DNA from: Macrostomum hystrix
Lineage: Eukaryota > Animalia > Platyhelminthes
Reading direction: 5' to 3'
DNA: 64,000 bases
Assembly: GCA_950097015.1 (NCBI GenBank)
Contig: CATNEN010000003.1
Coordinates: 2,790,001-2,854,000, forward strand
Numbering within the stretch: position 1 is the first letter of the stretch; each line of letters starts with the position of its first letter. Shown in pieces: positions 15,045 through 64,000 of the stretch. The notes beneath the pieces are model-generated. The model had not been told where the DNA came from, did no database searches, and saw nothing but the letters and a program-made list of their open reading frames with translations. The position numbers were made by a program, and so were the translations under genes.

Positions 15045-16323
15045 AGCAACGAGAAAACGATTAGCAATGGAGGACTATAGGAGAGCTAGGGAAACTATGG
15101 CTACTGAATGTAACAAACTAAAATGTTAAACTGTGCCGCTAAGTTTGTCTTGCTCAAGCTTTAGCTTAAGGAGGTGGATAAGCTGAAAATTGTCTAGTTG
15201 CAAGTAGTGCTCAAAGTGCTTCCTGAAATTTTAAAAGAAAGTTGGTGAAAGCGCAGACTTCATAATAATGATAATGTTTTAACTTAGTAACAAAAATATC
15301 TTAGCAAAAATCATCAAAAACATTGTTGGATATAAAAACTAACTATTTAAAATGACCATTACTAGTAAAAGCAAGTGCACATATTAAATATTTTAAATAC
15401 AATCTAAAACAGGTCATGTGATTATGATGCTTAACAATTTGGCTCGATTGACTATGATGTGAACTAAATTCTGGATAATGATAAAAAAGATGCTGATGTA
15501 TCCCAGTGAAGTGAATAAAGAAAATAAATGAACTAATGACCATTAAATAATAACTAATATTTACTTACATAACAATAATTACCAGTGTGAATATTGGAAC
15601 TTACAAGGTTAAACAAAATATGAAACAGTTGTCACTACATAACAAAATCTATTATTCCAGTTTTTAACTTGCAAAGTACTATTTTTTAATTTTATATTGC
15701 CATGAAATCACTGAGATATGATAGCTCTCTACAAGAAACTAGCTTTTCAAAAAAACTAAAAATGTGAATATATAATCTAATGTATTTAAAATACAAATGC
15801 ATAAACTTGACAACAGTCAAAAGCAAACTTTTTTATTATTAGAGGAGTTAGCGTTTTACTCATCGTCTAGGGTCTAGGTCTAGCTAACTCAAAATGAGTT
15901 ATAAATTTGATTCTGCTTTTTAAAGCAAACAAAATACTTTTAAAAATTGATGCTTAATTTCCTTTTCTTGCATGAGTCAGAAAGAGTTAAGTGTTAAAGT
16001 CTTCTTGAGTTATAAGTTTTATTCTTATGTCAATATTTAATTTTCTCTTCAAATAATTTATTTTATTTTTTAGTTTAGTAACCTTTGCTCAACATGCCAC
16101 TTTTTACTAATTAAACAACAATATAGTCATCGATAAAGCAAATTTAAAGTATCGTGCGTATCTGGGCTTTGTGTTATTAAGTTTATGTTACTAATGTTTA
16201 CCAAAGAAAATAAATACAGAACTAAATAAACCGATATATTTCAACGTTTAAAAACTTTGCGCGAAACAAATGCTGTATATGGGGGGTGTATAAAACATGG
16301 GCTCGCATTGGGCACACTGGGAC

Positions 16324-19300
16324 CACCCGTGTTACACTCCGTAAAGCCAAATCTGCGTTACAACACGAGCCTACAAAGCGGTACTCTGCGCGCAGCGGCG
16401 TATTGATACGCGCAGCTTATAGCTTTCAAAGCCAATACAACGCTTTTATGTGGGGCAAACGTCGAACGTGCTGCTATATATAAATACGTGCTGAAATATA
16501 AATATAAAGCATGCTGCTTATGTTAAATAAGTTTCGCAACAGGACAACTAATCTAACATAATGTTTAGGCTAGTGAAAGCTTAAGCCAGTAATTATACAA
16601 TTAGGCTATCGTATAATTGGAATTGGCTGTTGCTAATTCTATTTTTAGTACTAGCACTAATAGTAGCTAGGCTGAGCTAGTTGAATATGACTATTCAAAA
16701 GGATATTAGACAATAGCAAAAAATTATATATCATATATCGACTATAGCTTTAGGTATAGCTTGCTTATGTGCTTCTGTGTACTGTGTAGCCTAGCTAAAA
16801 TATGTTTAGTGTATATATATATAGGCCTATATATATATATATATATAACTGCTATACAGCATTATAGCCTACTTCAAAACCACTTTCACAATTGATAATC
16901 AATGGCCTGACAAATATAACTAGATTCAATGCAAGTACACCAGTATTTAAATAAACTGACTAGTCTAAATGAAATTCTCTTGGTAGCTATTGATATGAAA
17001 AATGTTTTGATATACCTAAATACCTAAAAATAGCTAAAGGTCCCTACCTATATAAATGTTCTTTTTATTGACTGACAAAATGTATATAATTATATTGATC
17101 TAGCTCCTGATCTATTATGTCTTGTAAATCTATTATGTCTACTAGCAAAATAAAAAGAAACATTATTGCCAGCTAGCTAGTTACTATCCTAAAGGCTTTC
17201 CTACTCTCCTCTAGCCTCCGCCCTCCTCAACCATCCTCTACCCTCCACTACTCTCCTCTATCTTCCCTGCCATCCTCTACCCTCCACTACCCTTCACTAT
17301 CCTCCCCACCATCCTTTACCCTCCTTCACCATCCTCTACTCTCCTCTACACCCTTCCCTCTTCCCTCTACTCCTCTTCCCTTTACTACTATCCTCTACCC
17401 TCCTCTACTCTGCTCTAACCTCTTCTCTCCACTACCATCCTCTACCCTTCTCTACCCTCTTCTACCCTCCTATAACCTCCTCTAACCTCCTCTACCCTCC
17501 TTTACCCTGCTCTACCCTGCTCTACCCTCCTCTACCCTCCTCTAACCTCCTCTAACCTCCTCTACCCTCCTCTACCCTGCTCTACCCTGCTCTACCCTCC
17601 TCTACCCTCCTCTAACCTCCTCTAACCTCCTCTACCCTCCTCTACCCTGCTCTACCCTGCTCTACCCTCCTCTAACCTCCTCTACCCTCCTCTACCCTTC
17701 TCTACCCTCCTCTAACCTCCTCTAACCTCCTCTACCCTGCTCTACCCTCCTCTACCCTCCTCTAACCTCCTCTAACCTCCTCTACCCTGCTCTACCCTCC
17801 TCTACTCTCCTCTATCCCCTTCCCTCCACTACCATCGACCATCGACCATCCTCTACCCTCCTCTACCCTCCTCTACCCTGCTCTACCCTCCTCTACTCTC
17901 CACTACCATCCTCTACCCTTCTCTACCCTCCTCTACCCTCCTCTAACCTCAACCTCCTCTACCCTCCTCTAACCTCAACCTCCTCTACCCTCCTCTACCC
18001 TGCTCTACCCTCCTCTACCCTCCTCTAACCTCCTCTAACCTCCTCTACCCTCCTCTACCCTGCTCTACCCTGCTCTACCCTCCTCTACCCTCCTCTAACC
18101 TCCTCTAACCTCCTCTACCCTCCTCTACCCTGCTCTACCCTGCTCTACCCTCCTCTAACCTCCTCTACCCTCCTCTACCCTTCTCTACCCTCCTCTAACC
18201 TCCTCTAACCTCCTCTACCCTGCTCTACCCTCCTCTACCCTGCTCTAACCTCCTCTAACCTCCTCTACCCTGCTCTACCCTCCTCTACCCTCCTCTAACC
18301 TCCTCTAACCTCCTCTAACCTCCTCTACCCTGCTCTACCCTCCTCTACTCTCCTCTATCCCCTTCCCTCCACTACCATCGACCATCGACCATCCTCTACC
18401 CTCCTCTACCCTCCTCTACCCTGCTCTACCCTCCTGTACTCTCCACTACCATCCTCTACCCTTCTCTACCCTCCTCTACCCTCCTCTAACCTCAACCTCC
18501 TCTACCCTCCTCTAACCTCAACCTCCTCTACCCTCCTCTACCCTGCTCTACCCTGCTCTACCCTCCTCTACTCTCCTCTATCCCCTTCCCTCCACTACCA
18601 TCGACCATCGACCATCCTCTACCCTCCTCTACCCTCCTCTACCCTCCTCTAACCTCAACCTCCTCTACCCTCCTCTAACCTCAACCTCCTCTACCCTCCT
18701 CTACCCTGCTCTACCCTGCTCTACCCTCCTCTACTCTCCTCTACCCCCTTCCCTCCTCTTCCCTCCACTACCATCCTCTACCCTGCTCTACCCTCCGCTA
18801 CTCTCCTCTACTCAACTATACTCTACTATATCTTTCCCTGCTCTTTCCTCCTCTACCCTCCTCTACTCTCCTCTACTCAACTCTACTCTACTATATCTTT
18901 CCCTGCTCTTTCCTCCTCTACCCTCCTCTACTCTCCTCTACTCAACTCTACTATATCTTTCCCTGCTCTTTCCTCCTCTACCCTCCTCTACCCTTCTCTA
19001 CCCTCCTCTACCCTCCTCTACCCTCCTCTACTCTCCTCTACCCCCTTCCCTCCTCTTCTCTCCACTACCATCGACCATCGACCCTCCTCTACCCTCCTCT
19101 ACCCTCCTCTACCCTCCTCTACCCTCCTCTATCTTCCCCGCCATCCTCTACCCTCCACTCCCCTTCTCTTTCCTACCCGCCATCCTCTACCCTCCACTCC
19201 CCTTCTCTATCCTCCCCAACATCCTCTACCCTCCTTCACCAGTCTTTACTCTCCTCTACCCCCTTCCCTCCTCAACCATTCTCTACCCTGCTCTAACCTC

Positions 19301-19618
19301 GTCGATCCTCCCCACTATCCTCTACCCTCCGCTACCCTCCTCTATCTTCCCCGCCATCCTCTACCCTCCACCACCCTCCCTAGCCATCCACTAATCTCCT
19401 CTACCCCCTTCCATCCTCTTCCCTCCACTACCATCAACCATCCTCTACCCTCCTCTACCCTGCTCTAACCTCCCCTACCATCCTCTACCCTGCTCTAACC
19501 TCCCCTACCATCCTCTACCCTGCTCTAACCTCCCCTACCCTCCCCTACCCTGCTCTACCCTGCTCTACCCTCCTCTACCCTCCTCTACCCTGCTCTAACC
19601 TCGTCGATCCTCCCCACC
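16324..19618 (+). repeat. Left terminal inverted repeat (~880 bp unique AT-rich part plus C-rich satellite)
   Basis: Reverse complement of ~34533-38079. In the unique part I saw only small differences (2-bp indel near 17037/37366, TA-run length). The inner boundary is approximate. Confidence 0.92.
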
Positions 19619-20660
19619 CTCCTCTATCTTCCCCGCCATCCTCTACCCTCCACCACCCTCCCTCTATCTTTCCCTGCTCTACCCTCCTCTACTCTCCTCT
19701 ACCCCCTTCCCTCCTCTTACCTCCACTACCATCGACCATCGACCATCCTCTACCCTCCTCTACCCTCCTCTACCCTCCTCTACCCTCCTCTAACCTCCTC
19801 TACCCCCTTCCCTCCTCTTCCCTCCACTACCATCCTCTACCCTTCTCTACCCTCCTCTACCCTCCTCTAACCTCCTCTAACCTCCTCTACCCTCCTCTAA
19901 CCTGCTCTACCCTGCTCTACCCTCCTCTACTCTCCTCTACCCCCTTACCTCCTCTTCCCTCCACTACCATCGACCATCGACCATCCTCTACCCTCCTCTA
20001 CCCTCCTCTACCCTCCTCTAACCTCCTCTACCCTCCTCTACGCTCCTCTACCCCCTTCCCTCCTCTTCCCTCCACTACCATCGACCATCGACCATCCTCT
20101 ACCCTCCTCTACCGTCCTCTACCCTCCTCTACCCTCCTCTACCCTCCTCTACCCTCCTCTACCCTCCTCTACCCTCCTATACCCTCCTCTAACCTCCTCT
20201 AACCTCCTCTACCCTCCTATACCCTCCTCTAACCTCCTCTAACCTCCTCTACCCTCCTCTACTCTCCTCTACTCTACTCTACTCTACTCTACCTTTCCCT
20301 GCTCTTTCCTCCTCTACCCTCCTTTACCCTCCTCTACCCTCCTCTACCCTCCTCTACTCTCCTCTACCCCCTTCCCTCCTTTTCCTTCCACTACCATCGA
20401 CCATCGACCCTCCTCTACCCTCCTCTACCCTCCTCTACCCTCCTCTACCCTCCTATACCCTCCTCTAACCTCCTCTAACCTCCTCTACCCTCCTCTACCC
20501 TCCTCTACTCTCCTCTACTCTCCTCTACCCTCCTCTACTCTCCTCTACTCTACTCTACTCTACTCTACTCTACTCTACCTTTCCCTGCTCTTTCCTCCTC
20601 TACCCTCCTTTACCCTCCTCTACCCTCCTCTACCCTCCTCTACTCTCCTCTACCCCCTTT
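17200..20660. repeat. C-rich 10-bp satellite (CCTCTACCCT / CCTCTAACCT / GCTCTACCCT)
   Basis: Read directly; strongly pyrimidine-biased plus strand. Confidence 0.97.
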
Positions 20661-20760
20661 CTTTTTCTTTTTCTCGTCTTGTTTGTCGTTTATTGATTGC
20701 GTTTTTAAATTGTCAATGTTTTTTTCTAAATAATGATATGCCTATCTTCAAATTGCAGGC

Positions 20761-23700
20761 ATGTTGAGAAAGCTTTCTTCTTGGAATGTGTTCTGTATGG
20801 AACAACAAAAAGGACGAAGTGACTTGAGTTGTAAGTTTTTAACAATATTTAAATTTAGGTAAGAGTCAATATATTATTTTTTGCCATAATTTATTAAACC
20901 AAAACGAAAAAATGATAGGAAATTGTTCAGAAGTATATTAGATTGATTTTATGAAGGCTTGCTTCCCTGCTTAGGTTTGATGCCCTTTGCCCAAAGCAAT
21001 GGAAAAATTGGTCTTGTTCGTTGTTTTCTTCATCGGGCCTTTTTCATCTGCAGTTCGTGGGAGCTGTTCCACAATGAGATTGAACATCTGACACGTTTAT
21101 TTGGTCTTATCGGCTACCTGAGAACCTTCCTGTCTAGAATTACGAGTATTAACAAGTTTCTGTGTGAAAAGCTGGATGACCCGCAGAGTTTGCAAGCTTT
21201 TGAGCCTAAGAATCATATTATTTCGTTACCTTTCTTGGATTGTGCTCTGTTGAGTTTAAAAAGATCAGAAAGTTATTCCGAAAAAAAATCTCAATGCTCA
21301 AATTCGTCTTGTTTTTCGCACCGAAAAGATCGCTATGTTTGTGAGCAATCTGAGATATAGTGTGCCTCGACCTCTTGCTGCAGCTGGTGTTGTGTACAAA
21401 TTTTATTGTTCTGGTGACCGGAACATTTCCTATATAGGAAAGACTAAGCGAAACCTGTACACGAGGGTTAGAGAACACTGGCTTAAGAACTCTGCCATTA
21501 ATGAACATCTGCTCCCACGCAAGAGATGCTGTGACGCTGAACCACATGAAATTATTAAGACTATAAGGTTTTGTAAGAACGATTACAAACTTCGCCTATT
21601 AGAGGCTATGTACATTAAGGCCCAAAAACCTACTCTTAACAATCAGCTCACCATGCGGGGTGCTAGCCGTCAGCTTCAACTTTTTTAGTTTGCTTGCTCA
21701 AAACTGGACTGGACTGACTTGACGCGTACCATGCCTTTACACCCAAAATTTAGCACATAGTCTTGTACTTTTATTCTCTCGTCAACCGTAATAATATATA
21801 TATGTTCAAATCAATATAATATATTTATGAATATATTTCTTTTCTTGTGTCGTTTTTTGTTTAATAAATTATTGAGTTCTGAAGATTACCATTGTGGACA
21901 ACATGCATCGGCAATAACATATTATGCTGATTCTTACCTTCATTTATCTATTGTTCCTAAAGCGAGCTACACTACCTGAATTTTACCAATATTCTTCCTC
22001 CTTGAATTTTATGCTAAATGTAAGTCAACACTTGCACGTACGCAACACACGCACCTTTCCAGCTGCACCTTGCCCCACCGCAGCTTGCTCCACCACACCT
22101 TGCCTCACCAAACCTTGCACCATCGTATCTTGCTTCACCGCAACTTGCACCACCGCACATTTCCTGCTGCACCTTGCATTACTACAAAAGCGTATATTCA
22201 ATTTTCCACCAATTGTAGCTAATTCGCAGAACTTAAGCCAAATATTTGCAAACCTGCCTCCTGAAGAGCTGGAGCGTCTTAAGCTAGCTGCTGAGAGAGC
22301 GAATGCTGAGAACCAAGCAGGAAAGAAAGTGGAGTCCATAAAGCTGAAGCGCAAGTTCGAATCTTTGGTTAGTCACTGAGCACTGACCAATTACATATAC
22401 GAGCGTATACGAGATATATACCTATTTTGTGATATCTCGCATACCTTTAATTTTCAACTAGGTTACCCAGTTGGCAAAAATCGGAGGCAGTGCCTCTTGT
22501 GTAATTCGTCTGCCAGACCGCAAACTAGTCATTCTTGAAACCCCTGATGTTAGTGGAGCCGCAGAGCGGACGAATTTCGCTTCAGTAAGTAACTTCTAGC
22601 GCTTTAGTCCACATGCGAATACCAAGTTGAACGCGAGTTAAATCGTTATTCAACGTTTTGTCTCTTTCTAGTATGCGTTCTTTCGCAGCAGCGGTTCTAC
22701 CGATGACATGACAATCGAAGAGTTGCGCTCTTCATGCGCTTCCATGCTACAGCTTAAGTATAGTAAGTGCGACTATTCTGCATAATCGTATATCATTGTA
22801 TATCATTCCGTTAAACGTATTTCAGAATGTAGAATGTAATGTAGTCCTCGATTGTGTATGTCCATCTATCCAAATTATGTTACTACTTTCAGATTATTAT
22901 AATTAACTTGTATGAGCACAATCCTGTAATGCTTTTAGAGCAGTCAGGCGGCGGCCGTCGTCTGAACTACGTAAAATATCCAGCCCAGGGATTTTGGTCC
23001 TCATGGCCTCTAGGCGTTCCACCGAATATTCCAGTCAATTCGATGTCAAAGGAGCAGCTTCTCAAAGTCTGGCGCGTCAGAGACGAGCTACAGTTCAATC
23101 CCAGGAGCAGCTCCTCTGTTTCAACCGGATCGTTTAATCGAAATCTGGATCATGAGTCTGGGTTTGTTATACCATATTTTTTACATATTTTTTTTAAGTT
23201 CGTTGTGCTTGGATTAGCAGCCTGCAAAAAGGCAATTCTGCCAATTTCGCTGACCCCTGAACAGACACGCGCATACTCACTAGAAAGTGTGTGTGTGTGT
23301 GTGTGTCTGTGTGTGTACTCTTGTACTCTGTATGTAAACTCTGCCCTGACTTCATCCTCAGGCAGCTCGTCGACGCTTGTACACTCACAGTGTGCCTCCG
23401 ACCGTCCAATGCGTCAACTGCACTTCCCACTTCCCTATTTTTAAGCTAAGTACTCATGAACTCACTAAACTCCTTTTAGGTCATCCGTGGCTGGCGTTTT
23501 TTCGGGTTTTGTCGAATACGATAGCACCAATCAAGCCACCTTTGAGCGCTCATCTTCCGAGACCGCTTCCGATTCTGGTGCTGCTGCCTCGGTGCGCACG
23601 ACATCTGGTGCTGCTGCCTTGGTGCGCACGACATCTGGTGCTGCTGCGTCGGTGCGCTCGACATCTGGTGCTGCTGCGTCGGTGCGCTCGACATCTGGTG

Positions 23701-24377
23701 CTGCTGCCTCGGTGCGCTCGACATCTGGTGCTGCTGCCTCGGTGCGCACGACATCTGGTACTGCTGCGTCGGTGCGCTCGACATCTGGTGCTGCTGCGTC
23801 GGTGCGCTCGACATCTGGTGCTGCTGCGTCGGTGCGCTCGACATCTGGTGCTGCTGCCTCGGTGCGCACGACATCTGGTGCTGCTGCCTCGGTGCGCTCG
23901 ACATCTGGTACTGCTGCGTCGGTGCGCTCGACATCTGGTGCTGCTGCCTCGGTGCGCTCGACATCTGGTGCTGCTGCCTCGGTGCGCTCGACATCTGGTG
24001 CTGCTGCCTCGGTGCGCTCGACATCTGGTGCTGCTGCCTCGGTGCGCACGACATCTGGTACTGCTGCGTCGGTGCGCTCGACATCTGGTGCTGCTGCCTC
24101 GGTGCGCTCGACATCTGGTGCTGCTGCCTCGGTGCGCTCGACATCTGGTGCTGCTGCCTCGGTGCGCACGACATCTGGTACTGCTGCGTCGGTGCGCTCG
24201 ACATCTGGTGCTGCTGCGTCGGTGCGCTCGACATCTGGAACCATTATCACTAACTCCGATCCTTCACCTCCTTTCTCGTTAGTCCAGAGTACAGTTGCCG
24301 GGTCGTCTGGCATTCGCGTTTTCTTTCGTTCCTCTGACTCAGTAGCGACAAAAGTTTTTCGAATAGACACCTCTTAG
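20761..24377 (+). CDS. Transposon accessory gene, 6 exons, ~517 aa: N-terminal HMG-box-like region, central WP-motif region, C-terminal 10-aa repeat
   Basis: Exons 20761-20830, 22219-22367, 22462-22584, 22672-22762, 22939-23161, 23480-24377; all GT-AG and phase-consistent (1554 nt). Spliced N-terminus MLRKLSSWNVFCMEQQKGRSDLSSNSQNLSQIFANLPPEELERLKLAAERANAE follows the HMG-box helix pattern. The 3' end is less certain. Confidence 0.7.
20959..21688 (+). mobile_element. Penelope-like retroelement 3' fragment (RT thumb/linker plus GIY-YIG endonuclease), frameshifted
   Basis: GVVYKFYC...SYIGKTKRNLYTRVREH...SAINEH...LEAMYIKAQKPTLNNQ is a GIY-YIG domain; upstream LHRAFFICSSWELFHNEI...ISLPF is typical of PLEs; lies in intron 1 of the HMG-like gene. 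Confidence 0.9.
23215..23420 (-). mobile_element. Truncated SINE family A copy (3' part)
   Basis: GGCAATTCTGCCAATTTCGCTGACCCCTGAACAGACACGC resembles 32250-32290 and the reverse complement of 49640-49680; intronic. Confidence 0.65.
23570..24240 (+). repeat. 30-bp coding tandem repeat (TSGAAASVRS)n, ~22 units
   Basis: Units ACATCTGGTGCTGCTGC(C/G)TCGGTGCGC(T/A)CG inside predicted exon 6. Confidence 0.95.
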
Positions 24378-24529
24378 CAACCGTCTTCTTTTCTGGCTCA
24401 TATCAGTTAAAGATTGTGAACATAAAATCGGTCGTAGTTTACGCTAAGGTCTTTCTAGCCACTGTTTTAGTTCTTATTCGTAGTTGTACAACTTCCCACG
24501 ATAGAAACACCGAGCATCTAAAATTCTGG

Positions 24530-24828
24530 ATTGCATTTAGATAATGTTGCATTTAGATAGTGTTGCATTTAGGTAGTGTTGCATTTAGATAGTGTTGCAT
24601 TTAGATAGTGTTGCATTTAGATAGTGTTGCATTTAGGTAGTGTTGCATTTAGGTAGTGTTGCATTTAGATAGTGTTGCATTTAGGTAGTGTTGCATTTAG
24701 ATAATGTTGCATTTAGATAGTGTTGCATTTAGATAGTGTTGCATTTAGATAGTGTTGCATTTAGGTAGTGTTGCATTTAGGTAGTGTTGCATTTAGATAG
24801 TGTTGCATTTAGATAGTGTTGCATTTAG
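24530..24828. repeat. 16-bp tandem repeat GTTGCATTTAG(A/G)TAGT
   Basis: About 18 units, read directly. Confidence 0.95.
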
Positions 24829-25429
24829 CGGTGCGTATTTTTAATGCAGGATGACGAGAACAAGTGGGGAGCTGGACTAAAACGAGGTAGAAACCAGAAT
24901 AAAGTTAGCCCGCTCTACAGCATTTATCACATGCTTATGTAAGCACTGCTCCCCTCACCTTTCGAAGTGCTTGAGTGGCAAAAGGCCATGATGGTAATTT
25001 TATACTGAGTTGATCAGGCGCAATCAAGGCAAAAGGACTTTATCAATGACCACTTGACAACATACAGCTTGCTAATTAAATAAGATTTGAGAGGAATTTA
25101 AGTATACGTGATTGGCAGCCAAAAGTTTGACTTCACTCATGTGAGTTGTTACTCGTAAAGGCTGAAAGTGTACTCTCAGTTTTCCTGGATTTTCTTGGCT
25201 TTTTTACTTTGCTTAATCAAGTCGCTAGATTTAGCTAGGTACTTTTTTCTTTGCTAAGCACTTACTATGTCTTCTTACGGAAAGTGTGGCGAGGTTCTAC
25301 ATGTATGACAATTGTTGTAATGGGAAATTAAAAAATGCAGCCATAAACCATTTTCATGGTGTATGGAATATCCTGCGGAGTAATATTCATAAAATAATTA
25401 ACTGCACGTGCCCCAATTGGGGCAGATTT

Positions 25430-25560
25430 ACAGAAGACAGCACAGCCGCAGCTATTTTGCGCTGTGCCTCCGCAGGCTGGGTATGACTATTCAGTCCATG
25501 GACTGGGGCGGGGCCACGCGCAGCCTCAATTACGCTGGCACCCGTTTAAAGCTTGGCCTT
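25430..25560 (-). mobile_element. Degenerate SINE family B fragment
   Basis: TTCAGTCCATGGACTGGGG...CCAC...CCTCAATTAC is shared with 41900-41945. Confidence 0.5.
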
Positions 25561-25821
25561 AATAACATGGTATATAATAACAAACGCTACGTAGCCCACT
25601 GCATGGTAACAAAAAATGGGCATCAATTAAGGCTCGCGTCGAATGGGGCGCCACAGCAGACAGCTTGCGAGCGGACAAACTCCGGCCGTTGTCAGTGTCG
25701 TTTGAGACCATAAAAAACGTAAAATTTTGCTTAGTCTAAAAAACTAAAATTAAACTTACACTCCATATTCAACTCAAAACGCGTGACTTGTATATCGAGC
25801 ACTGGATTGACTCCGATGTAA

Positions 25822-26147
25822 GTAGGATGACTGCGAGTGTATTCAATACAGCTGGGATGCAAGTACATGTAGGATGACTGCGAGTGTATTCAATACAGCT
25901 GGGATGCAAGTACATGTAGGATGACTGCGAGTGTATTCAATACAGCTGGGATGCAAGTACATGTAGGATGACTGCGAGTGTATTCAATACAGCTGGGATG
26001 CAAGTACATGTAGGATGACTGCGAGTGTATTCAATACAGCTGGGATGCAAGTACATGTAGGATGACTGCGAGTGTATTCAATACAGCTGGGATGCAAGTA
26101 CATGTAGGATGACTGCGAGTGTATTCAATACAGCTGGGATGCAAGTA
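25822..26147. repeat. 47-bp tandem repeat GTAGGATGACTGCGAGTGTATTCAATACAGCTGGGATGCAAGTACAT (~7 units)
   Basis: Period of 47 bp read directly; the last unit is interrupted by the Tc1 element and resumes at 27747. Confidence 0.95.
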
Positions 26148-27746
26148 TTGCTTTTGTCGCGCTATGTGGAACAGTGGACATGCAAAACGGAACGGCCCAT
26201 GGTGGAATTCTATGGCCAAGCGTTTGAATTCACACGAGAAAGAAGCCATAGACAACTCAATTTGTCATGCTATGTGGAACGATGAGCCAGAATAGAAGGA
26301 ACGATTTTAGTTTTTCAGAGACAAGAACACGCTTTCATTTTCTTTCGTTTGATCAGTTAAGCAATAATGGCGCCCCAAATTGCTGTACGTGATCGACGTA
26401 CAGCGCATCGTCGCCGCCTTGCACCGTGGACTGTCGATGAAGGATGTGTCAGTCTTGTTAGGAGTATCCAAAACTTCTGTTCAGCGTATTCGGTCAACAT
26501 TCGAACAAGCTGCATGGCAGGTTGGAAGCTTTGCCTCGTGGAGGATGCAAGGAAGCAAACTGCAAAATGGACGCAAAGATGCGAGATTTTTTACAACATG
26601 AGGTGCAGCGAAATCCCTTTCAAACGCTAAAGTCAATGGCTGAGAAGCTGATCGGACGCTTTCCTGACAAGCCACAGGTGAGCCTTAAAACAATTGATCG
26701 AACAATGGATGGTTTGCTCTTTACGGTCAAACTTGCTACCAAGGGGACGGATATATTCACCTAAACACCAACCGAGTCGAAAGCCTGGACGCCAGAAGCG
26801 AATACGCTAACTTCATGCTCCACTTAGCTCCAGGAGTTCACACTGTCTACTTAGATGAGACCGGTTTTAACTTGTGGACCCGGAGGTCGTAGGGCAGGTC
26901 GGCTCGTGGACACCAAGTGTTCGCAAGGATTCGGCACGGTGACAACCCAGAGGGGTCCTAACGTTACGGTTTGCATGGCAATTTCGTCGGAGTTCCGGTT
27001 GGTGCATTATGTCATCCAGAGAGGGGCCAAACGCAGCAAAGGTTTCAAGAATTTTTAGACCACCTAGCAGACCGCTGCCATCAACTGGACCCTACCGGAA
27101 ACTGGGTAATTTTTATGGATGGCCCAAATTTTCATCGTGGTGTGGAGATCCGAGAGAACCATCGGGACAGAATTGTGACACGAATCCTACCCCCGTATTC
27201 ACCATTTCTAAACCCGACCGAATTTGCTGCGTTGAAGTCAAATCTCAAGAACCGTTTGGCGGAAGCCGGCATGGTTGAGAATGAGCAAGTTTGAACAGAA
27301 GGAGTGACACTTAAGCAGTGGAGATTCATGCTACTTGAACGAGAGGCGACTGAAGCTGTTGGTCAAGCAATCACTGCGGACAAGTGCGCTGGCTGGGAGC
27401 TGCGCTGCAATCGATTGTTTGGATTGGGTTTGAGGCGACATCTGTTTTAGGGGTTGAAATTTTTTAACTTTGATGTTTCAATTGCAGACTTAAAATATGA
27501 TTTATTGGAATGCAACTCTGAAAAATGTTCTGTTTCTGCTTAATTTCATTCTTTCTGCAAATAAAATCTAAAATCGTTCCTTCTATTCTGGCTCATCGTT
27601 CCACATAGCATGACAAATTGTCTTGCATCAATTGCATGAGTTGTCTATGGCTTACTTTCTTTTGTGAGTTCAAACGCTCGGCCATAGAATTCCATGGGCC
27701 GTTCCGTTTTGCATGCCCACTGTTCCACATAGTGCGAAAAATACAA
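26148..27746 (+). mobile_element. IS630-Tc1-mariner superfamily transposon, ~1.6 kb, ~165-bp imperfect TIRs, TA target duplication, disrupted transposase
   Basis: TIRs 26148-26310 and ~27568-27746; TA at 26146-7 and 27747-8. Transposase pieces 26367-27450: HTH (LSMKDVSVLLGVSKTSVQRI), YLDETGF, IFMDGPNFH, LPPYSPFLNPTE, broken by stops and frameshifts. Confidence 0.93.
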
Positions 27747-29540
27747 TACATGTAGGATGACTCTGAGTAAGTGAGTTAAGTGAAGTGGTAAAAAGCTTCG
27801 TACATATGTATATGGCAAATTCTTAACAAAATGTTTTTTGGGTGGCGTAAGGGTGAACGATATGCTGACGATGGCGGGCCAATCGTTGAAATTGCGTGAG
27901 CCGAAGTGAATAATTTCGACAAAGTAAGTTAAAAATCACTTTGACATGTCTACGCTCTTATAATGTGCCCTGGGCATTCACGCTTGTCACGATGCCCAAG
28001 CACACTAATACGAGCATTTTAATTTAATTGCGTACACGCACGATGACTCAGTTTAAGTCATCGTGAGGCAGATAACAGGTAACTGTCTGCCTGTCTCGCT
28101 TGACCTTGGAGCATGTGCACCTATGTCTGTTAGTTTGATGCGAATCTGCGGGGCTTCAGCCTCTCCCCCGCGCTGTCAGTATTTAAGAGGGCTTTCAGCC
28201 TGTGTGCCAGCGCGCTTTTTGACACCTTCTGCTGCGTGTTGCTTTTCGAGTCTGCATTTCTAAAACTGGTGCCGCTGGTTATTTTAGCGCCAAATAAATG
28301 TTCGCTTTAACTGTCCGGCCTCGTCCTATCGGTTGTTCGTGCCATGCATTTCTGCTGCTTGGACTACATCCTCTGGGAGTTAGCATTTTTTTGGGTTATT
28401 GCGATACCAAAATATTAATTTGTAAGTACTTTTACCTGATTGAAATGTGGTTCCAATCATCAAGGACAATTTATAATTGGACGAATCAACCAACGATTCA
28501 TAATTTAAGCTTACGCTCGTAGTCCTTCTGGTATAATTGGCACGTTCTAGAACCGAAAAAAAGAAAGAAATCGGATGAATAAAACTTTATACAGACCTAA
28601 AATTTTATTCGCCGTTAATTAATTTCCGTTAAACACACAATCAGATATACAATTTATTTGGCTTTTAACCGTTTCCTTAAAAAAATCGCAGCAAGGAAAG
28701 CAATCCAATATACATTCATGATTGAAGTAACAAAAATGGAGATATTTTTGACTTACCATGAGCCTTAGATTTAATAAATAATGAACATAGCTTTGATTCT
28801 CATCAAAACGTGTCGTCTTTCCACAAGCTCTCTAAGACATCAGCGATCACGGTAGGTTCTAGATCAACTGAACTCAATTTGTAACAAAAACTGGGTAACT
28901 ATCCTTTCTATATATTATGGATCAGAGAAACCATTCAAACAATCATAGGCATGCAATGTAAGGGGCGTAAGGAACAATTACGAGAATTTAGTTGGGCACA
29001 GGACGGAACCGGTATAAATGTAACAATTACTTGCTACGTTAAGCTACGCTTGTTTCTATGGTATTTATATAATGCCTCGAATTTAGTCTATTATACAATT
29101 AAAAAATAGCTAGAAGTACAACGTTCAGAAACAACACAAATATAAGTAGGGAGATACGAGAAGTTATACGAGAAGATACAAGAACCTGAAGTACAATAAG
29201 CTTGACTGATTTGCAAATACATAAGTGAACTGCATGTACATTACTAAACAAGAACAGCATTAAAAAGAATTTCTGAGCATAAGATTATAGCTTATCCTGT
29301 GCAAGTAACGTGACTTTAATCAACTGCGCTTGTAAGTGCCACAGATAACCTAAAGCCACAGCCACACTGCTGCTCTGAACATTTTTGCTGCCTATCGCTA
29401 GCTCGTACGTACGCGTTTTCTTAGCACATACATGTGTAAGTTAAACTGGTCTGGGAATCCAGAGCACATATGTCATTCACAAGTAAGTCAGAGAAAAAGA
29501 AGTGCAGACCCGACAACGCAGTGCATTAAGAGAACTGAAT

Positions 29541-32500
29541 TCATTCAGTGTCTGTGTCATCATCCGATGCTGAAAGAACAGGAAGGAATGAAATAATAGT
29601 ACGAAAAGCTATTTATAGCACAATGTAAAGCAGTACGAGCGACAAATCACGCGCGCATATTCGACAATTTGTTGCCTGTGTGGGCAACAAAAACATAATA
29701 AAGTGAGCCCGAAATAATCTAGTCTAAAGTGATGAGATACAAACACTTTCAATCTTTACAACCTTCTGAAACTATCATACCATAACATGGACATGGTCGC
29801 CGAATCGTTTTTAAAAATTGGCAATTTTTACTTACCGGAGTCACTCATAGAGTAAACGTCACACGTTTCTTCGTCAAGAGCCACAGAGCCGACTGCCTCC
29901 ATCGCCAGTATGTTGGTGTCTTGAACCAGGGTTTTTTCTGATGGAAAGGCGGTGACATGCCGATGAAGAAGTCGACTGAGACCGATGAGCCGATTGTAAA
30001 GCACAGGAGAGTTATAATGACTTGAGGCAATGCGCGCCCAGGTTTGCTGAATGGCCCGAAGTAGAAAGCGGGTGGAGCGTCGAACTTCACACTCCACAAT
30101 GGCTATCTCCTCTTTAGCTCGAAGGCGCATATGATATAGACGATAGGCAACCATCTGCGACGTTGTATTTGCGTCCAATTGGCTAAGATTAGCTGTTTTA
30201 AAGCCTTCAGCTGCAAAGCTCGTAAAATCTTCTAGACTAAGTGGAGGCTCAGAAGATAGGCTAGAGTTGAAGCGACGAACTATGATCTCGCGTTTTTTAT
30301 CGATTGCTTTCTTAGCCGACGCCAAGCGTTTTGCCATTTTCTGACCCCGATCGGTAGCGACATGCTGGGCCAGATATTCCCGCTCTGCGGTTAGTGCAGC
30401 TAGATCGTTGATAGCTAACTCACGAGTAGTGCTCACCCGTCTTTGATTAGATGTTGCCATGATGGATGCACAAAAGTCTGGCGCCCAAGATTCCACGTAC
30501 GCCTCAGAAGCAGAAAGCGTCGCTGAAAAAAGTAACGAAAAATTATTGCGGAAAAGCAAGAGTAAAAAGAGGCTACATTTAATCGAGTGCAAAGCATGCT
30601 GTACTAAATTAAAATGTTTTGCTTTTGTGCAAAGTTTATCTGACGAGTTCATACGTGAGATTTGATGGCTCGAAGCAAATGCAGTTATCTCATTTTCGAT
30701 GCGTGCATTGGTCCGCTGGACGTATTTGATGCGCTGCGTCAGCCAGTTAGCTACACGAATTTAGGCATCGGATGGGATGGTTGTTAAGTTATTAATTGGG
30801 ATAAAACTTTCACGTGTACAGAATTAGCTGACTTTGATAACTTATTAGCATGAGCGCAAGAGAAAGAGGTCAAGAAGCACAAGATGCAAAACTTCCCGCA
30901 AAAGCATTTCCGGTTCATTTATAAACTACAAGTAGCTGGTATTGCCTTACTGATGTTGACGATTAATTCGAAGTTCATGTCAGCAGCTAAAGTGTTTAAA
31001 AATCGACGTCTATTGACGTGAGTCATCTCCTTCGTTTGTGCGGAAAAAACGCCGTAAATAGCTCCACAGTCGTTCGCAACCTTCGCCGTCTGTAAGACCG
31101 ACATCCGGTTTGAAGCGTACGCCGTTTGTTAGCTGGCACGGCCATGAATGTCCGTAGGCATGCATTGCAGGCACTACGAAAGCAATTTGAGAATCCCGAA
31201 ATGTAGCTTTCAGCTTGCATGCAATGTCATATGAGACAATAATGCGAGCCGCTGGGTTGCGTGCCACAGCTGTCTTCACTGATGCCACAGCGTAGTTGAG
31301 TCTAAGATGGAGTAGTTCGGATTGGCTAGCAAGTAAGTCCAGTGCATAGTACATTAAGTTTAAAGTTTCTGCGACCAACCCCAAACTTAATGTGGCTTTG
31401 CCTTGTAGCGGCTCATGACTAGCCGTTAGGATGCATTACCACTCTGCCAATGATCAGAAAAAATGAAAAATGAAAATTCCTAACTAAAACTAAACTCTTA
31501 ATCACATTACCGTTCTCCACTTGTAATCATATCCGAAAGCGTTAATATTGACTCGTGGCGGCAAGATGCAGCAAACAGGCCAAAGACATCCAAATTTGTT
31601 TTGTCTCTTGCCGTGACGAGCTGCTGACCTCTTTCACCTGCTTTCCAATTAGGACAACTCTGAGCATTGACTTGAAAGTCACCGGACATGTCTGCTTCCA
31701 CAAAGTAGCTATTGGTGTCGTGCTCAGGAAAAGATGAAAGGCCGGCAGAGGCTCTGTGCCGCATTCCGAAGCAGCCGTCGAGCTGAACAATCAATGGAGC
31801 CGACAAGGTATCTTGGCATTCGGACTAAACAGAGATTAGGAATGGTTAAAAAAAATTATTTTGACTAAAAAAGCAATACAATACACGTTGGAGCACTGTT
31901 TGGAGAAAGTGGGGCAAAACTTGACGAAATTTCGAGGCTCCTATAAATTACATTTCGCACATGTGAATATTTACAATACCCATGATTAGATATAAGAGAA
32001 GGAAAAATGCTAATTCTTCGACTTAAACCGTATAGCAAGCTGGACAATTGGTCTCTCCATCCCACTGAATTGAACTCAAAAGCTGGCGAAAAGCAGTCAT
32101 TGAGCCGAAAGTATTCAGCGGCCGGTATAGATTCATCTGAAATAAAAAAGCTTGATAACATATACTACCTGTAATAATAATAATGTTAGCAGGAGGGCTG
32201 TGGGCAATGGCACATCATTTGGTGACACTAGACCTGCAGCCAGCGAGGAGGCAATTCTGCCCATTCCGCTGACTCCTGAGCACACACGCACACAGATACC
32301 GTACGCAGGCACACACTCACACAGAGGTGTACATCTGCCCTGACTTTTTCATCGTCAGGCGGTGTACATTTTCTGTGCGTTGGAGGTTGGCCCTCATGGG
32401 CGTAAATTGCACGACAAGCCCCCAAGCCTTCTCTCCGCGGCTGCACCTCAAATTAATGTGGCCTTGCTCGCGGAATCGAGCTCAGGGACCGTGGTGCGAG

Positions 32501-34282
32501 AGGCAAACGCGTTAACCGCTCTGCCACTCACCCCCTCATATACTACCTATAAAAACATCAAGCATCAAAACATTTTGCATTGAATTCTGTCACCAAATAA
32601 ATTTGGCTCCAAGAGTATACAGGTACCAAAACTTCCTGACTTAACGTGCATGTAGACAAAAAAATTACTTCATCGTACCCCTTGTCGGCCCCACATAGGC
32701 GATCTGAAAGATGCCATGGCACAACAAGCACTTTGTAGGGAGCCTGCACACTTTTTGTTGATAGCGATAAGCTGTAAAAGGAGCTTGAAAGAGGCAGCAG
32801 TAACGCGAATCGCCAGATCTGGTTCAGCTTGCAGCGGCCAGAATCCATGGCGAACCAGTGATGCGCGGATGTTGCTGCAATTACATACTTCTAAAGAAGC
32901 ATCGAATTCGTCGCCTGAAATTGTGTTATGAAATTTGATTGGATTTCAGCGTAATGTATATGTATATGATGTATGAGGTGGAGCGAGTGTATGTTGTGTA
33001 TATGTTGTATCTCAATATCAGCACGATCTAGGATTAGAAACTAAGGGTGAGCTGCCGACAGCACAGCCACAGCCATTGCGTAGCGCATTTGAAGATTCAC
33101 AAAATTAATCCCAGACAATGCTAGCACTCATTTAACAGCTGGGTGAACTGAAGCAATGCAGAGTTAAGTGTTGTGCTAATAGACAAAAAGTTTACAGTAA
33201 AATCAGGAATCGAACCTCGACCTTCAAGCCCTGAGTCGGACATTATAAACTACAAACCCACATGTCGGTAAGAAAGCAAGAAGGTTTTCCGCTTTAAAAG
33301 GTTTTAAAAAAGTAATTTGGCCCTGTACAAATAGTGATAAAAATCGTATAGGCATTTACTTACCATTGTCATCAAAAATAAACACTTGCTTGACAAACGA
33401 TGATCCCAAGCACGAGCATCGACGTTTCAGCACAGCGGGAGCTGTCAGTGGAACGTAAACAAGACCCTGTTGGAAGTAGTAAATTAAAAAATACAAACAA
33501 TTCTGAATTCTGAGAATAAAAATGCAAATGATACAGTGAAAACACTGTAAAAAATACAATAGTATAGTGTATTGATAAACTAATCTTAAATGTCATAAAA
33601 ATCATTCAAAGTGCACCGAAAGCCAAAACTGTAAAGGCTCGTTCACACTGCCATGAAATGAAGTGACTCGTTTTGGTGTACACCTACTTTGTGGTAAAAT
33701 GAATGGGAATTAAGAAAGTAAATTACTGTGTTCTAGCCTACGTTTGATGGCAGTATGAGCCAACTTTAAAGCTTACATTCCACTGTTCCGCCACGTGCGG
33801 AGGATGATGTTTGTGTTGTTCGTCAAGGCAATTACGGCAGACTTGCAGTAAGTGGCATGCACTGCACCGAAACGGCGCCTCATGTGTTTTACACTTTACG
33901 CAGTTGCCTAATGGGCTAAAAAAATCGCAGATTGCTGACTCTGCATCGCGCTGGCTATCTGACCATGCCTTGGTAGCACGATTGATACGATCCTGATATT
34001 GTGTGTTGCCACACAGGGGTGGTGAAGCAGAACTGAATGAAAGGTGTTCTTCGGCACTGGGGGCAGATTCTTGATCATGTGGTCGTTGCGGCGGTCTGTG
34101 AAGGTTTTTTATACGCTAAAAACTTACAATTCTGTACATTTACGCGCAACGTACACTTTCCGTAATCACAGAACTTACAAAGAGCTAGTACCATCAACCG
34201 TTATCTTTCGCCTGCTAGCTCGCTGACCAGGTGTGTAGTGTCTTACTTTAAAGTGCAACTCAGTAACTTTTGCACGCAGCAT
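29541..34282 (-). CDS. KDZ (Kyakuja-Dileera-Zisupton) family transposase with N-terminal CxC-type zinc-binding domains; 10 exons, ~781 aa, one +1 frameshift in a homopolymer
   Basis: Exons 34282-34179, 34095-33777, 33466-33364, 32914-32679, 32136-32029, 31824-31511, 31301-30951, 30750-30655, 30522-29836, 29569-29541; GT-AG and phase-consistent except one extra base in the A6 run at 31044-31049. Motifs: CVKC..FRCSAC..CRNC..H..PPH..EQWNG; VCNC..LVRHGFWP; CPAC; LDGCF; SCRH..DMITSGER; YDIAC; VPAMHAYGH..CQ; GLTDGEGCERLWS; RAKEEIAIVECE. Confidence 0.9.
32171..32536 (-). mobile_element. Full-length tRNA-derived SINE (family A) with 12-bp TSD
   Basis: TSD CATATACTACCT at 32159-32170 and 32537-32548; minus-strand head with A-box TGGCAGAGCGG and B-box-like GCTCGATTCC; (ATT)n tail; lies in transposase intron 4. 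Confidence 0.88.
33050..33265 (-). mobile_element. Degenerate tRNA-derived SINE (family B)
   Basis: GGGTGAACTGAAGCAATGCAGAGTTAAGTG...GGAATCGAACCTCGACCTTC is shared with 41970-42060; lies in transposase intron 3. Confidence 0.65.
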
Positions 34283-34362
34283 ATTGCTAAAAAAATAATG
34301 CCTTATGAGTAAACACTAAACAGCGAAAAATGTCGATTTATAAAAGGAAGAGCAAGCTTAGC

Positions 34363-37200
34363 AAGAGGAGGATAGAGGAGGATAGAGCAGGGTGGAGGAG
34401 GCTAAAAGAGGCTAGAGGAGGTTGAGGATGGTGGAGGGTAGAGGATAGTGGGGAGGGTAGAGGAGGGTAGCGGAGGGTAGAGGATGGTTGAAGAGGGTGG
34501 AGGGTAGAGGATAGTGGGGAGGGTAGAGGATGGTGGGGAGGATCGACGAGGTTAGAGCAGGGTAGAGGAGGGTAGAGGAGGGTAGAGCAGGGTAGAGCAG
34601 GGTAGGGGAGGGTAGGGGAGGTTAGAGCAGGGTAGAGGATGGTAGGGGAGGTTAGAGCAGGGTAGAGGATGGTAGGGGAGGTTAGAGCAGGGTAGAGGAG
34701 GGTAGAGGATGGTTGATGGTAGTGGAGGGAAGAGGATGGAAGGGGGTAGAGGAGATTAGTGGATGGCTAGGGAGGGTGGTGGAGGGTAGAGGATGGCGGG
34801 GAAGATAGAGGAGGGTAGCGGAGGGTAGAGGATAGTGGGGAGGATCGACGAGGTTAGAGCAGGGTAGAGAATGGTTGAGGAGGGAAGGGGGTAGAGGAGA
34901 GTAAAGACTGGTGAAGGAGGGTAGAGGATGTTGGGGAGGATAGAGAAGGGGAGTGGAGGGTAGAGGATGGCGGGTAGGAAAGAGAAGGGGAGTGGAGGGT
35001 AGAGGATGGCGGGTAGGAAAGAGAAGGGGAGTGGAGGGTAGAGGATGGCGGGGAAGATAGAGGAGGGTAGAGGAGGGTAGAGAAGGGAAGGGGGTAGAGG
35101 AGAGTAGAGGAGGGTAGAGCAGGATAGAGCAGGGTAGAGGAGGGTAGAGGAGGGTAGAGGAGGGTCGATGGTCGATGGTAGTGGAGAGAAGAGGAGGGAA
35201 GGGGGTAGAGGAGAGTAGAGGAGGGTAGAGGAGGGTAGAGAAGGGTAGAGGAGGGTAGAGGAGGAAAGAGCAGGGAAAGATATAGTAGAGTAGAGTTGAG
35301 TAGAGGAGAGTAGAGGAGGGTAGAGGAGGAAAGAGCAGGGAAAGATAGAGTAGAGTAGAGTTGAGTAGAGGAGAGTAGAGGAGGGTAGAGCAGGGTAGAG
35401 GAGGGTAGAGGAGGGTAGAGGATGGTAGTGGAGGGAAGAGGAGGGAAGGGGGTAGAGGAGAGTAGAGGAGGGTAGAGCAGGGTAGAGCAGGGTAGAGGAG
35501 GGTAGAGGAGGTTGAGGTTAGAGGAGGGTAGAGGAGGTTGAGGTTAGAGGAGGGTAGAGGAGGGTAGAGAAGGGTAGAGGATGGTAGTGGAGAGTACAGG
35601 AGGGTAGAGCAGGGTAGAGGAGGGTAGAGGAGGGTAGAGGATGGTCGATGGTCGATGGTAGTGGAGGGAAGGGGATAGAGGAGAGTAGAGGAGGGTAGAG
35701 CAGGGTAGAGGAGGTTAGAGGAGGTTAGAGGAGGTTAGAGGAGGGTAGAGGAGGGTAGAGCAGGGTAGAGGAGGTTAGAGGAGGTTAGAGCAGGGTAGAG
35801 GAGGGTAGAGCAGGGTAGAGGAGGTTAGAGGAGGTTAGAGGAGGGTAGAGAAGGGTAGAGGAGGGTAGAGGAGGTTAGAGGAGGGTAGAGCAGGGTAGAG
35901 CAGGGTAGAGGAGGGTAGAGGAGGTTAGAGGAGGTTAGAGGAGGGTAGAGGAGGGTAGAGCAGGGTAGAGCAGGGTAGAGGAGGGTAGAGGAGGTTAGAG
36001 GAGGTTAGAGGAGGGTAGAGGAGGGTAGAGCAGGGTAGAGGAGGGTAGAGGAGGTTGAGGTTAGAGGAGGGTAGAGGAGGTTGAGGTTAGAGGAGGGTAG
36101 AGGAGGGTAGAGAAGGGTAGAGGATGGTAGTGGAGAGTAGAGGAGGGTAGAGCAGGGTAGAGGAGGGTACAGAGGAGGGTAGAGGATGGTCGATGGTCGA
36201 TGGTAGTGGAGGGAAGGGGATAGAGGAGAGTAGAGGAGGGTAGAGCAGGGTAGAGGAGGTTAGAGGAGGTTAGAGGAGGTTAGAGGAGGGTAGAGCAGGG
36301 TAGAGGAGGTTAGAGGAGGTTAGAGGAGGGTAGAGGAGGGTAGAGCAGGGTAGAGGAGGTTAGAGGAGGTTAGAGGAGGGTAGAGAAGGGTAGAGGAGGG
36401 TAGAGGAGGTTAGAGGAGGGTAGAGCAGGGTAGAGCAGGGTAGAGGAGGGTAGAGGAGGTTAGAGGAGGTTAGAGGAGGGTAGAGGAGGGTAGAGCAGGG
36501 TAGAGCAGGGTAGAGGAGGGTAGAGGAGGTTAGAGGAGGTTAGAGGAGGGTAGAGGAGGGTAGAGCAGGGTAGAGGAGGTTAGAGGAGGTTAGAGGAGGT
36601 TAGAGGAGGGTAGAGCAGGGTAGAGGAGGTTAGAGGAGGTTAGAGGAGGGTAGAGGAGGGTAGAGCAGGGTAGAGGAGGTTAGAGGAGGTTAGAGGAGGG
36701 TAGAGAAGGGTAGAGGAGGGTAGAGGAGGTTAGAGGAGGGTAGAGCAGGGTAGAGCAGGGTAGAGGAGGGTAGAGGAGGTTAGAGGAGGTTAGAGGAGGG
36801 TAGAGGAGGGTAGAGCAGGGTAGAGCAGGGTAGAGGAGGGTAGAGGAGGTTAGAGGAGGTTAGAGGAGGGTAGAGGAGGGTAGAGCAGGGTAGAGCAGGG
36901 TAAAGGAGGGTAGAGGAGGTTAGAGGAGGTTATAGGAGGGTAGAAGAGGGTAGAGAAGGGTAGAGGATGGTAGTGGAGAGAAGAGGTTAGAGCAGAGTAG
37001 AGGAGGGTAGAGGATAGTAGTAAAGGGAAGAGGAGTAGAGGGAAGAGGGAAGGGTGTAGAGGAGAGTAGAGGATGGTGAAGGAGGGTAAAGGATGGTGGG
37101 GAGGATAGTGAAGGGTAGTGGAGGGTAGAGGATGGCAGGGAAGATAGAGGAGAGTAGTGGAGGGTAGAGGATGGTTGAGGAGGGCGGAGGCTAGAGGAGA
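34363..37200. repeat. G-rich 10-bp satellite (AGGGTAGAGG / AGGTTAGAGG), inverted counterpart of 17200-20660
   Basis: Read directly. Confidence 0.97.
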
Positions 37201-38079
37201 GTAGGAAAGCCTTTAGGATAGTAACTAGCTAGCTGGCAATAATGTTTCTTTTTATTTTGCTAGTAGACATAATAGATTTACAAGACATAATAGATCAGGA
37301 GCTAGATCAATATAATTATATACATTTTGTCAGTCAATAAAAAGAACATTTATATAGGTAGGGACCTAGCTATTTTTAGGTATTTAGGTATATCAAAACA
37401 TTTTTCATATCAATAGCTACCAAGAGAATTTCATTTAGACTAGTCAGTTTATTTAAATACTGGTGTACTTGCATTGAATCTAGTTATATTTGTCAGGCCA
37501 TTGATTATCAATTGTGAAAGTGGTTTTGAAGTAGGCTATAATGCTGTATAGCAGTTATATATATATATATATATAGGCCTATATATATATACACTAAACA
37601 TATTTTAGCTAGGCTACACAGTACACAGAAGCACATAAGCAAGCTATACCTAAAGCTATAGTCGATATATGATATATAATTTTTTGCTATTGTCTAATAT
37701 CCTTTTGAATAGTCATATTCAACTAGCTCAGCCTAGCTACTATTAGTGCTAGTACTAAAAATAGAATTAGCAACAGCCAATTCCAATTATACGATAGCCT
37801 AATTGTATAATTACTGGCTTAAGCTTTCACTAGCCTAAACATTATGTTAGATTAGTTGTCCTGTTGCGAAACTTATTTAACATAAGCAGCATGCTTTATA
37901 TTTATATTTCAGCACGTATTTATATATAGCAGCACGTTCGACGTTTGCCCCACATAAAAGCGTTGTATTGGCTTTGAAAGCTATAAGCTGCGCGTATCAA
38001 TACGCCGCTGCGCGCAGAGTACCGCTTTGTAGGCTCGTGTTGTAACGCAGATTTGGCTTTACGGAGTGTAACACGGGTG
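34533..38079 (-). repeat. Right terminal inverted repeat
   Basis: Reverse complement of 16324-~19618, including the same irregular satellite variants (e.g. ACCATCGACCATCGACC); satellite copy number differs between the arms. Confidence 0.92.
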
Positions 38080-41559: not shown

Positions 41560-46540
<4,981 letters not shown>

Positions 46541-63863: not shown

Positions 63864-64000
63864 GTGAGTGCTGATGCTGCTGGCCTTGCGCTTCTAAACT
63901 GTGATTCCCGTGCAGTGTGTCAAATATTAGTTAACGACTAAACTGGCCTGTAAAGGCGAGCCGCAGTGAAAAGCTTTTTCAGTTATAATATTCGAGAAAA
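51720..64000 (+). repeat. 558-bp tandem array (372-bp exon plus 186-bp intron), at least 22 near-identical copies
   Basis: ORF ends recur every 558 bp (52150, 52708 ... 63874), with a few 559-560-bp units. Confidence 0.98.

Follow-up and report, generated by a model that had tools for sequence, protein, structure and literature searches.

The 64,000-nucleotide stretch of Macrostomum hystrix DNA analyzed here (contig CATNEN010000003.1, positions 2,790,001 to 2,854,000; termed the window) carries an element of ~21.8 kb whose ends lie at window positions 16324 and 38079. This element is very probably one of three near-identical copies of a 21.4–21.8-kb DNA transposon of the Kyakuja-Dileera-Zisupton (KDZ) class, which comprises a transposase gene and a second gene and is read as a cut-and-paste element. 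Members of the family insert as one complete unit that has the termini CAC...GTG and generates a 7-bp target-site duplication (TSD).

The terminal 877 bp of the element occur in full at six places in a genome search, which form three inverted pairs 21.4–21.8 kb apart. A preliminary description of the window, made from its letters without database searches, had proposed looking for further copies with different flanks as well as for empty sites, and both were found. Sister copies lie on contigs C38 and C31 and end at the same tips, where the homology between copies breaks off exactly. The C38 copy aligns to 16324–38079 as one piece at 99.1%; across the ~13.6-kb unique interior, the window copy differs from it by 2 substitutions (0.015%) and from the C31 copy by 43 (0.32%), the remaining differences being minisatellite copy number plus small indels. 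Each sister is flanked by a 7-bp TSD (CACTTGT at C38, ACTATTA at C31). The C38 copy is inserted within another repeat, of which five 99%-identical paralogous empty sites are present in the genome; at each of these, the stretch matching its left flank and the stretch matching its right flank have exactly 7 bp in common. The 21.8-kb unit was therefore inserted precisely and in its entirety at C38, and the near-identical copies with TSDs, together with the empty sites, indicate that the family is mobile and young. In the proposed mechanism, the transposase would excise the element and reinsert it by cut-and-paste.

The same evidence bears on the view that no transposon is present and that the 22 kb surrounding a KDZ gene arose by inverted segmental duplication or through faulty assembly. 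This view could appeal to the difficulty of assembling long inverted satellite arrays and to the missing TSD of the window copy. The architecture recurs on three contigs with homology ending at identical tips, and the 7-bp TSDs and five empty sites speak against such an origin; because of the empty sites, mis-assembly or segmental duplication is very unlikely, and we regard this explanation as barely credible.

The ends of the element are long terminal inverted repeats (TIRs). The perfect inverted ends and the more than 3 kb of inverted similarity recorded in the preliminary description are borne out by a repeat finder, in which the outermost arms (16324–17036 and 37367–38079) are 713 nt long and 100% complementary, the next pair (17038–17822 and 36583–37367) covers 785 nt at 99%, and many more pairs follow inward. 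The arms extend through 10-bp CT-rich satellites that fill the inner parts of both TIRs (Tandem Repeats Finder; left consensus CCCTCCTCTA) and account for the extreme GC skews of −0.9 and +0.8; left/right similarity ends just inside the arrays, at 20655 and 34364. Both tips read CACCCGTGTTACACTCCGTAAAGCC.

The transposase gene is located on the minus strand and contains introns. Its translations and the homolog alignment display the motifs CPACYTV, LDGCFGMRHR, CRHESI..GER, YDIACKL, HAYGHSWPC and DGEGCERLWS, so that the KDZ motifs listed in the preliminary description are all present on this strand. The Pfam KDZ profile PF18758, with a curated cut-off of 26.6 bits, matches two adjacent exons above that value, in frame 31010–31384 with 79.6 bits (E = 3.5e-22, profile positions 101–192) and in frame 31507–31806 with 44.3 bits (E = 2.3e-11, profile positions 3–98). 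The transposase carries a KDZ domain with the D-D-E-type motifs DGCF, YDIAC and DGEGCER, and a genome-wide scan with the profile gave the same assignment. A HMMER search with one exon as the query returned 947 relatives at E<=1e-3, of which the nearest named ones are hypothetical proteins of Macrostomum lignano (55–61% core identity), followed by proteins of molluscs, a sea star and many basidiomycetes.

Full-length relatives are colinear with eight blocks between 34082 and 29894, and the frames of these blocks, together with GT..AG sites and a reckoning of phases, gave the borders of the nine predicted exons. The predicted coding length in the sister copies is 2,322 nt, i.e., 774 codons; the 781 amino acids given earlier differ from this by the choice of one acceptor. 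The start codon (34282) is 82 bp inward of the right array and follows TTTTTTTAG/CAAT. The final two introns (200 and 132 nt, GT..AG) are exactly absent from database protein P0151, which has 404 residues and is ~80–94% identical; the lack of both introns is what a spliced transcript would give. The exon 32914–32679 aligns to M. lignano proteins named CxC2/CxC1 domain-containing in UniRef, and a Pfam scan of this exon returned no match at E<=1. Exon 2 displays a weak B-box match (Pfam, E = 0.011).

The second gene is located on the plus strand, convergent with the transposase, and its start codon (20761) is 106 bp inward of the left array; the two starts agree with the ~80–100 bp noted in the preliminary description. 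Exons 1 and 2 are conserved in the paralog L053, in which intron 1 is only ~120 bp long. Downstream, a conserved module of ~60 residues sits in an open frame at 22845–23441, and its paralogs are 29–41% identical. Seven of these paralogs (C9, C41, C1:17.5 Mb, C7, C1:19.99 Mb, C1:3.56 Mb and C39) lie 7–8.5 kb from a KDZ exon in convergent orientation, and the neighboring KDZ genes all belong to the intron-bearing group nearest to the window transposase. The 30-bp minisatellite in the likely last exon reads as 22 decapeptides, SGAAASVR[ST]T, in one open frame, and all module paralogs likewise run on into tandem peptide repeats. Since conserved exons recur beside KDZ genes, the second gene is taken to be real and part of the element lineage, in agreement with the earlier proposal of a gene reading inward from the other end, with its exons conserved beside KDZ genes at at least seven loci.

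Pfam returns no match for any exon of the second gene or for eight module paralogs, a protein homology search with the 199-residue frame found nothing, and the ESM Atlas yields no usable match. The HMG-like character that the preliminary description attributed to the partner amounts to a motif resemblance: exons 1 and 2 together make the pattern SSWNVFCMEQQK ... LSQIFANLPPEELERLKLAAERANAEN, and no Pfam HMG-box match at E<=10 is obtained for these exons or their paralogs taken singly, the box being one that would span both exons. For the module, a VIA-wide structure search independent of Foldseek places only 2 of 48,161 chains at Z>=2, and both are GTF2I domains; similarly, seven of the ten top rows of a Foldseek search are GTF2I domains. 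The module thus weakly resembles the GTF2I repeat fold, and several figures tell against a firmer assignment: the AlphaFold (AF2) model is of low confidence (mean pLDDT 63), the best Foldseek row reaches only E 0.23, the alignment to GTF2I is weak (Z 3.4 over 57 residues, root-mean-square deviation 4.0–4.2), and a profile search of the PDB with the module is not significant, GTF2IRD1 standing at E = 1 among noise.

The second protein may act as an accessory factor that binds DNA, in which an HMG-like head would be followed by a GTF2I-like repeat and a tail of decapeptide repeats. By analogy with TnpA at the subterminal repeats of CACTA elements, it might recognize the phased 10-bp repeats of the TIRs, a satellite-binding role that is purely conjectural. 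Additionally, both messages may receive a trans-spliced leader, which is proposed because an acceptor-like site lies 2–4 nt before each ATG.

Another view of the second gene is that it is captured cargo or a decaying fragment of a host gene without a role in transposition. It has no domain recognized by Pfam, its intron 1 has taken up a retroelement fragment, and its putative last exon has gained 1 bp in the C31 copy, all of which would suit such an origin; however, at no fewer than seven loci the module and the N-terminal exons recur at 30–70% protein identity next to diverged KDZ genes, with position and convergent orientation unchanged, as is expected of a long-maintained element gene and not of chance capture. 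We therefore consider capture quite unlikely and treat the second gene as a constituent of the transposon.

Part of the sequence between the two genes is nested material. A Penelope-like retroelement fragment occupies intron 1 of the second gene, and the open reading frames at 20947–21685, considered as exons of that gene, were rejected as the frameshifted GIY-YIG tail of this fragment. A 64-bp inverted repeat (82%; 20886–20949 and 21808–21872) brackets the fragment. The degenerate Tc1/mariner-like element further inward represents an independent family of repeats that is abundant; all three KDZ copies contain it.

Table 1. Positions of the transposon, its genes and associated features (window positions unless a contig is named; a slash marks a junction)
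Feature	Position	Strand	Basis or remark
Left flank, tip (42 bp) of a repeat from an unrelated family; the element interrupts this repeat	16282–16323	+	
Left TIR (4,332 bp)	16324–20655	+	Unique terminal segment 16324–~17200, tip CACCCGTGTTACACTCCG; then satellite 17221–20655
Right TIR (3,716 bp)	34364–38079	-	Satellite AGAGGAGGGT on the + strand (complement of the left array), 34364–37184; unique terminal segment up to 38079
KDZ transposase gene, nine predicted coding exons	29828–34282	-	Stop 29828–29830; Pfam KDZ, M. lignano homology, splice/phase arithmetic
Transposase exons 1–5	34282–34179, 34095–33777, 33466–33364, 32914–32679, 32136–32029	-	Predicted
Transposase exons 6–9	31824–31511, 31301–30951, 30750–30655, 30522–29831	-	Predicted
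A6 run on the + strand (T6 in the gene), A5 in both sisters; frameshift directly after DGEGCERLWSYLRRF	31044–31049	-	Homolog and sister alignment
Second gene, exon 1 (MLRKLSSWNVFCMEQQKGRSDLS)	20761–20830	+	Acceptor-like TTGCAG/GC before ATG, donor T/GTAAGT; 70% amino acid identity to paralog L053
Second gene, exon 2 (..NLSQIFANLPPEELERLKLAAERANAENQ..)	22219–22367	+	47% identity to paralog L053
Second gene, small helix-like exon (..IEELRSSCASMLQLKY)	22687–22764	+	Predicted; counterpart LRIAVSNMLQNKFSKY upstream of the module in paralogs
Second gene, exon with conserved ~60-residue module RRLNYVKYPAQGFWSSWPLGVPPNIPVNSMSKEQLLKVWRVRDELQF, candidate GTF2I-like repeat	22890–23165	+	3' boundary uncertain
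Second gene, likely C-terminal exon, frame open through the 30-bp minisatellite (23574–24238, 22 units)	23480–24374	+	Inferred
Penelope-like retroelement fragment, frameshifted GIY-YIG, in second-gene intron 1	20968–21751	+	Pfam; diverged relatives elsewhere
Nested degenerate Tc1/mariner-like element, HTH_23 + DDE_3, ~190-bp TIRs	26144–27749	+	Pfam
Two further minisatellites	24531–24828 (16-bp units), 25822–26147 (47-bp units)		Copy number varies among the three element copies
Sister copies	C38:27769981–27791818; C31:46607–67970	C31 in opposite orientation	Alignment to exactly 16324–38079
Empty sites of the C38 insertion	C39:10232046–52, C1:23959868–74, C8:2940436–42, C33:4514356–62, C24:2204667–73		

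Several observations count against the reading of the window copy itself as a complete, working transposon, and most splice sites in the gene models are predictions. Homologs read without interruption through ...ERLWSYLRRF-SAQTKEMTH..., and the alignment of the window copy switches frame at 31046/31047, where the extra A in the run at 31044–31049 puts two stops into transposase exon 7; in the two sister copies, every one of the nine exons is open. The intron-rich transposase gene of the preliminary description thus stands, and its uninterrupted reading does not apply to this copy. The extra A may reflect a genuine mutation or else a mistake in the assembly. As assembled, the window copy is probably non-autonomous because its transposase is frameshifted, and it would need transposase supplied in trans. 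With no TSD and a frameshifted transposase, its own activity is only putative, as judged from the assembled letters; of the earlier suggestion of a complete and possibly autonomous element, mobility as a whole unit is upheld through the sisters, and the integrity of this copy is not.

A serious but less probable possibility is that the window copy is intact and autonomous and that its three private 1-bp insertions (21281, 31044 and 31848) are homopolymer errors of the assembly. All three sit in A6–A9 runs, and the copy differs from its C38 sister by only two substitutions over ~13.6 kb. Yet slippage in homopolymers also ranks first among genuine mutations, 1-bp differences of its own are found in the C31 copy as well, some of them outside long runs, and the window copy also shows a rearranged flank. 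The window copy probably belongs to an active family, of which it would be a defective or mis-called representative.

No TSD is found at the two flanks of the window copy, of which the left ends in ...CACTGGGAC and the right starts with ATGCATAATAAAGG. The left flank is the tip of an unrelated repeat family (window 16282–16326) that begins GGGGGTGTATAAAACATGGGCTCGC... and has at least nine copies at 94–100% identity. Its other copies continue as ...GGGAC/CACTGGGTTTGAAAC, with a 3-bp microhomology (CAC) to the transposon tip, and this continuation is nowhere present in the window. Because the repeat tip is flush with the element and its continuation is absent, one flank appears to have been rearranged flush with the element tip after insertion. 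An adjacent deletion or an aberrant transposition might account for this. The right flank is single-copy over 465 bp. A locus at C3:8357 kb was considered as the missing half of the interrupted repeat and rejected, being just another copy of it. A 195-bp fragment at C3:3124675–3124869, 297 kb downstream on the same contig, contains the outer 185 bp of the TIR at 100% plus a flank, CATGCATGAT..., which resembles the right flank of the window copy (ATGCATAAT...) for ~10 bases; this fragment is possibly a templated patch, or else an old copy that has been truncated.

Among described KDZ transposons, Kyakuja elements of basidiomycete fungi have a 7-bp TSD, CA..TG termini and no TIRs, and often carry a TET/JBP gene (PMC12730594). 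The KDZ transposase domain, the 7-bp TSD and the CA..TG ends are common to both; compared by description, the window element differs in its 3.7–4.3-kb TIRs, its introns, its animal host, its other partner gene and its lack of TET/JBP. More generally, fungal KDZ members often carry TET/JBP (PMC12730594), whereas a genome-wide search with the Tet_JBP profile (PF12851) places no match within any of the three copies here, which bears out the absence stated in the preliminary description. The sole Tet_JBP matches in the genome lie at C1:5257733–5259697 and C38:11079765–11080100, in open frames of 940 and 822 residues unlinked to the KDZ copies.

Zisupton, known from animals (fish), fungi and others, is the KDZ lineage whose TIRs and TSDs are well characterized. 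Its transposase belongs to the same superfamily, PF18758, as that of the window element, and so does that of Dileera. Zisupton and the characterized Dileera family Zisupton-1_PGr have 8-bp TSDs (PMC12730594), in contrast to the 7 bp seen here at two copies and five empty sites. Neither multi-kilobase satellite TIRs nor the second gene seen here were found for Zisupton/Dileera in the literature searched.

The closest full-length relatives are M. lignano PAA89046.1, PAA55188.1 and PAA87534.1, which are colinear over all exon blocks and share the zinc-finger head and C-terminal region of the window transposase. They differ in being deposited as hypothetical proteins (UniRef 'CxC2/CxC1/B box-type domain-containing'), with no element structure, ends or partner described.

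CACTA/En-Spm and MuDR elements likewise combine a transposase with a second gene. CACTA elements have CAC... termini and subterminal repeat arrays that are bound by an accessory protein. The likeness is confined to layout: the transposases are different, and the TSDs are 3 bp in CACTA and 9 bp in MuDR as against 7 bp here. The tip CACCCGTG, the 7-bp TSD and the KDZ transposase set the element apart from both the CACTA and Mutator groups, so the MuDR comparison made initially holds as an analogy and not as a relationship.

No description of such an element was found in the literature searched. The KDZ class as such is not new to animals because KDZ proteins are already annotated in M. lignano, molluscs and a sea star, a point that weakens the remark in the preliminary description that the architecture was not recognized as described in animals. 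The element is a new architectural variant of the known KDZ superfamily, not a new class.

The M. hystrix genome holds ~100 matches to the PF18758 profile in at least three lineages. A separate lineage has uninterrupted frames of ~700–845 residues in at least a dozen near-identical copies, mostly on contig C1 (e.g., C1:19427868, C1:3464015, C7:10981807 and C25:9643636), and a third group consists of frames of 235–382 residues. Loci with an 86% match to the TIR tip (C38:4.26 Mb, C30, C39 and C33) were considered as KDZ relatives and rejected, as their tips differ, their TSDs are 9 bp long and their interiors are those of retroelements. They form a second family of 15–29-kb elements (C38:4259078–4279365, C30:4414660–4436126, C39:8820434–8849946 and C33) in which the TIRs are 3–4 kb long, the tip reads ACTAAGTACTGATTTCACC and the TSDs measure 9 bp (CAATTATCG, ATTGAGGAT). 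Internally, these elements contain the pol of a long-terminal-repeat (LTR) retroelement and two non-LTR reverse transcriptase/RNase H open reading frames, with no KDZ gene. In this family, a 160-bp stretch with 86% identity to the TIR tip of the KDZ element lies ~430 bp inside each end.

The surroundings of the element in the window form a tandem-repeat-rich region. Its flanks are dense in unrelated, strongly strand-skewed minisatellite arrays with units of 21–34 bp and lengths of up to 3.3 kb (3261–7007, 7864–8463, 8969–9506, 10490–13809, 44397–46175, 46881–47715, 48575–49000 and 49759–50274). A 558-bp satellite at 51208–64000 consists of at least 23 head-to-tail units, nearly all 99–100% identical, and runs past the end of the window. 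An Rfam scan of the window, this satellite included, returned no match.

To our knowledge, thorough study of KDZ elements has been confined to fungi and, in the form of Zisupton, to fish, and for animal KDZ proteins we know of almost nothing past 'hypothetical protein' entries. The present family provides a complete, datable and evidently recently mobile animal KDZ element whose ends are exactly defined, whose TSD is 7 bp long and for which empty sites and an exon map are available, and its conserved partner gene differs from the TET/JBP partner of fungi. It is thus suited to the study of KDZ end recognition, of the role of a non-enzymatic partner and of the tolerance of 4-kb satellite TIRs. 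A bolder proposal, which we put forward tentatively and consider rather unlikely, is that an animal KDZ clade has long kept a sequence-specific DNA-binding partner, made of an HMG-like head and a GTF2I-type repeat, whose platform is the kilobase-long, helically phased array of 10-bp TIR repeats. GTF2I-type repeats are known from the vertebrate TFII-I family; if the proposal were true, they would have a transposon-borne counterpart in flatworms, and giant satellite TIRs would be functional arrays for transposase recruitment and not junk. In the genome of M. hystrix, near-identical copies of the element may drive ectopic rearrangements, as the damaged flank of the window copy suggests.

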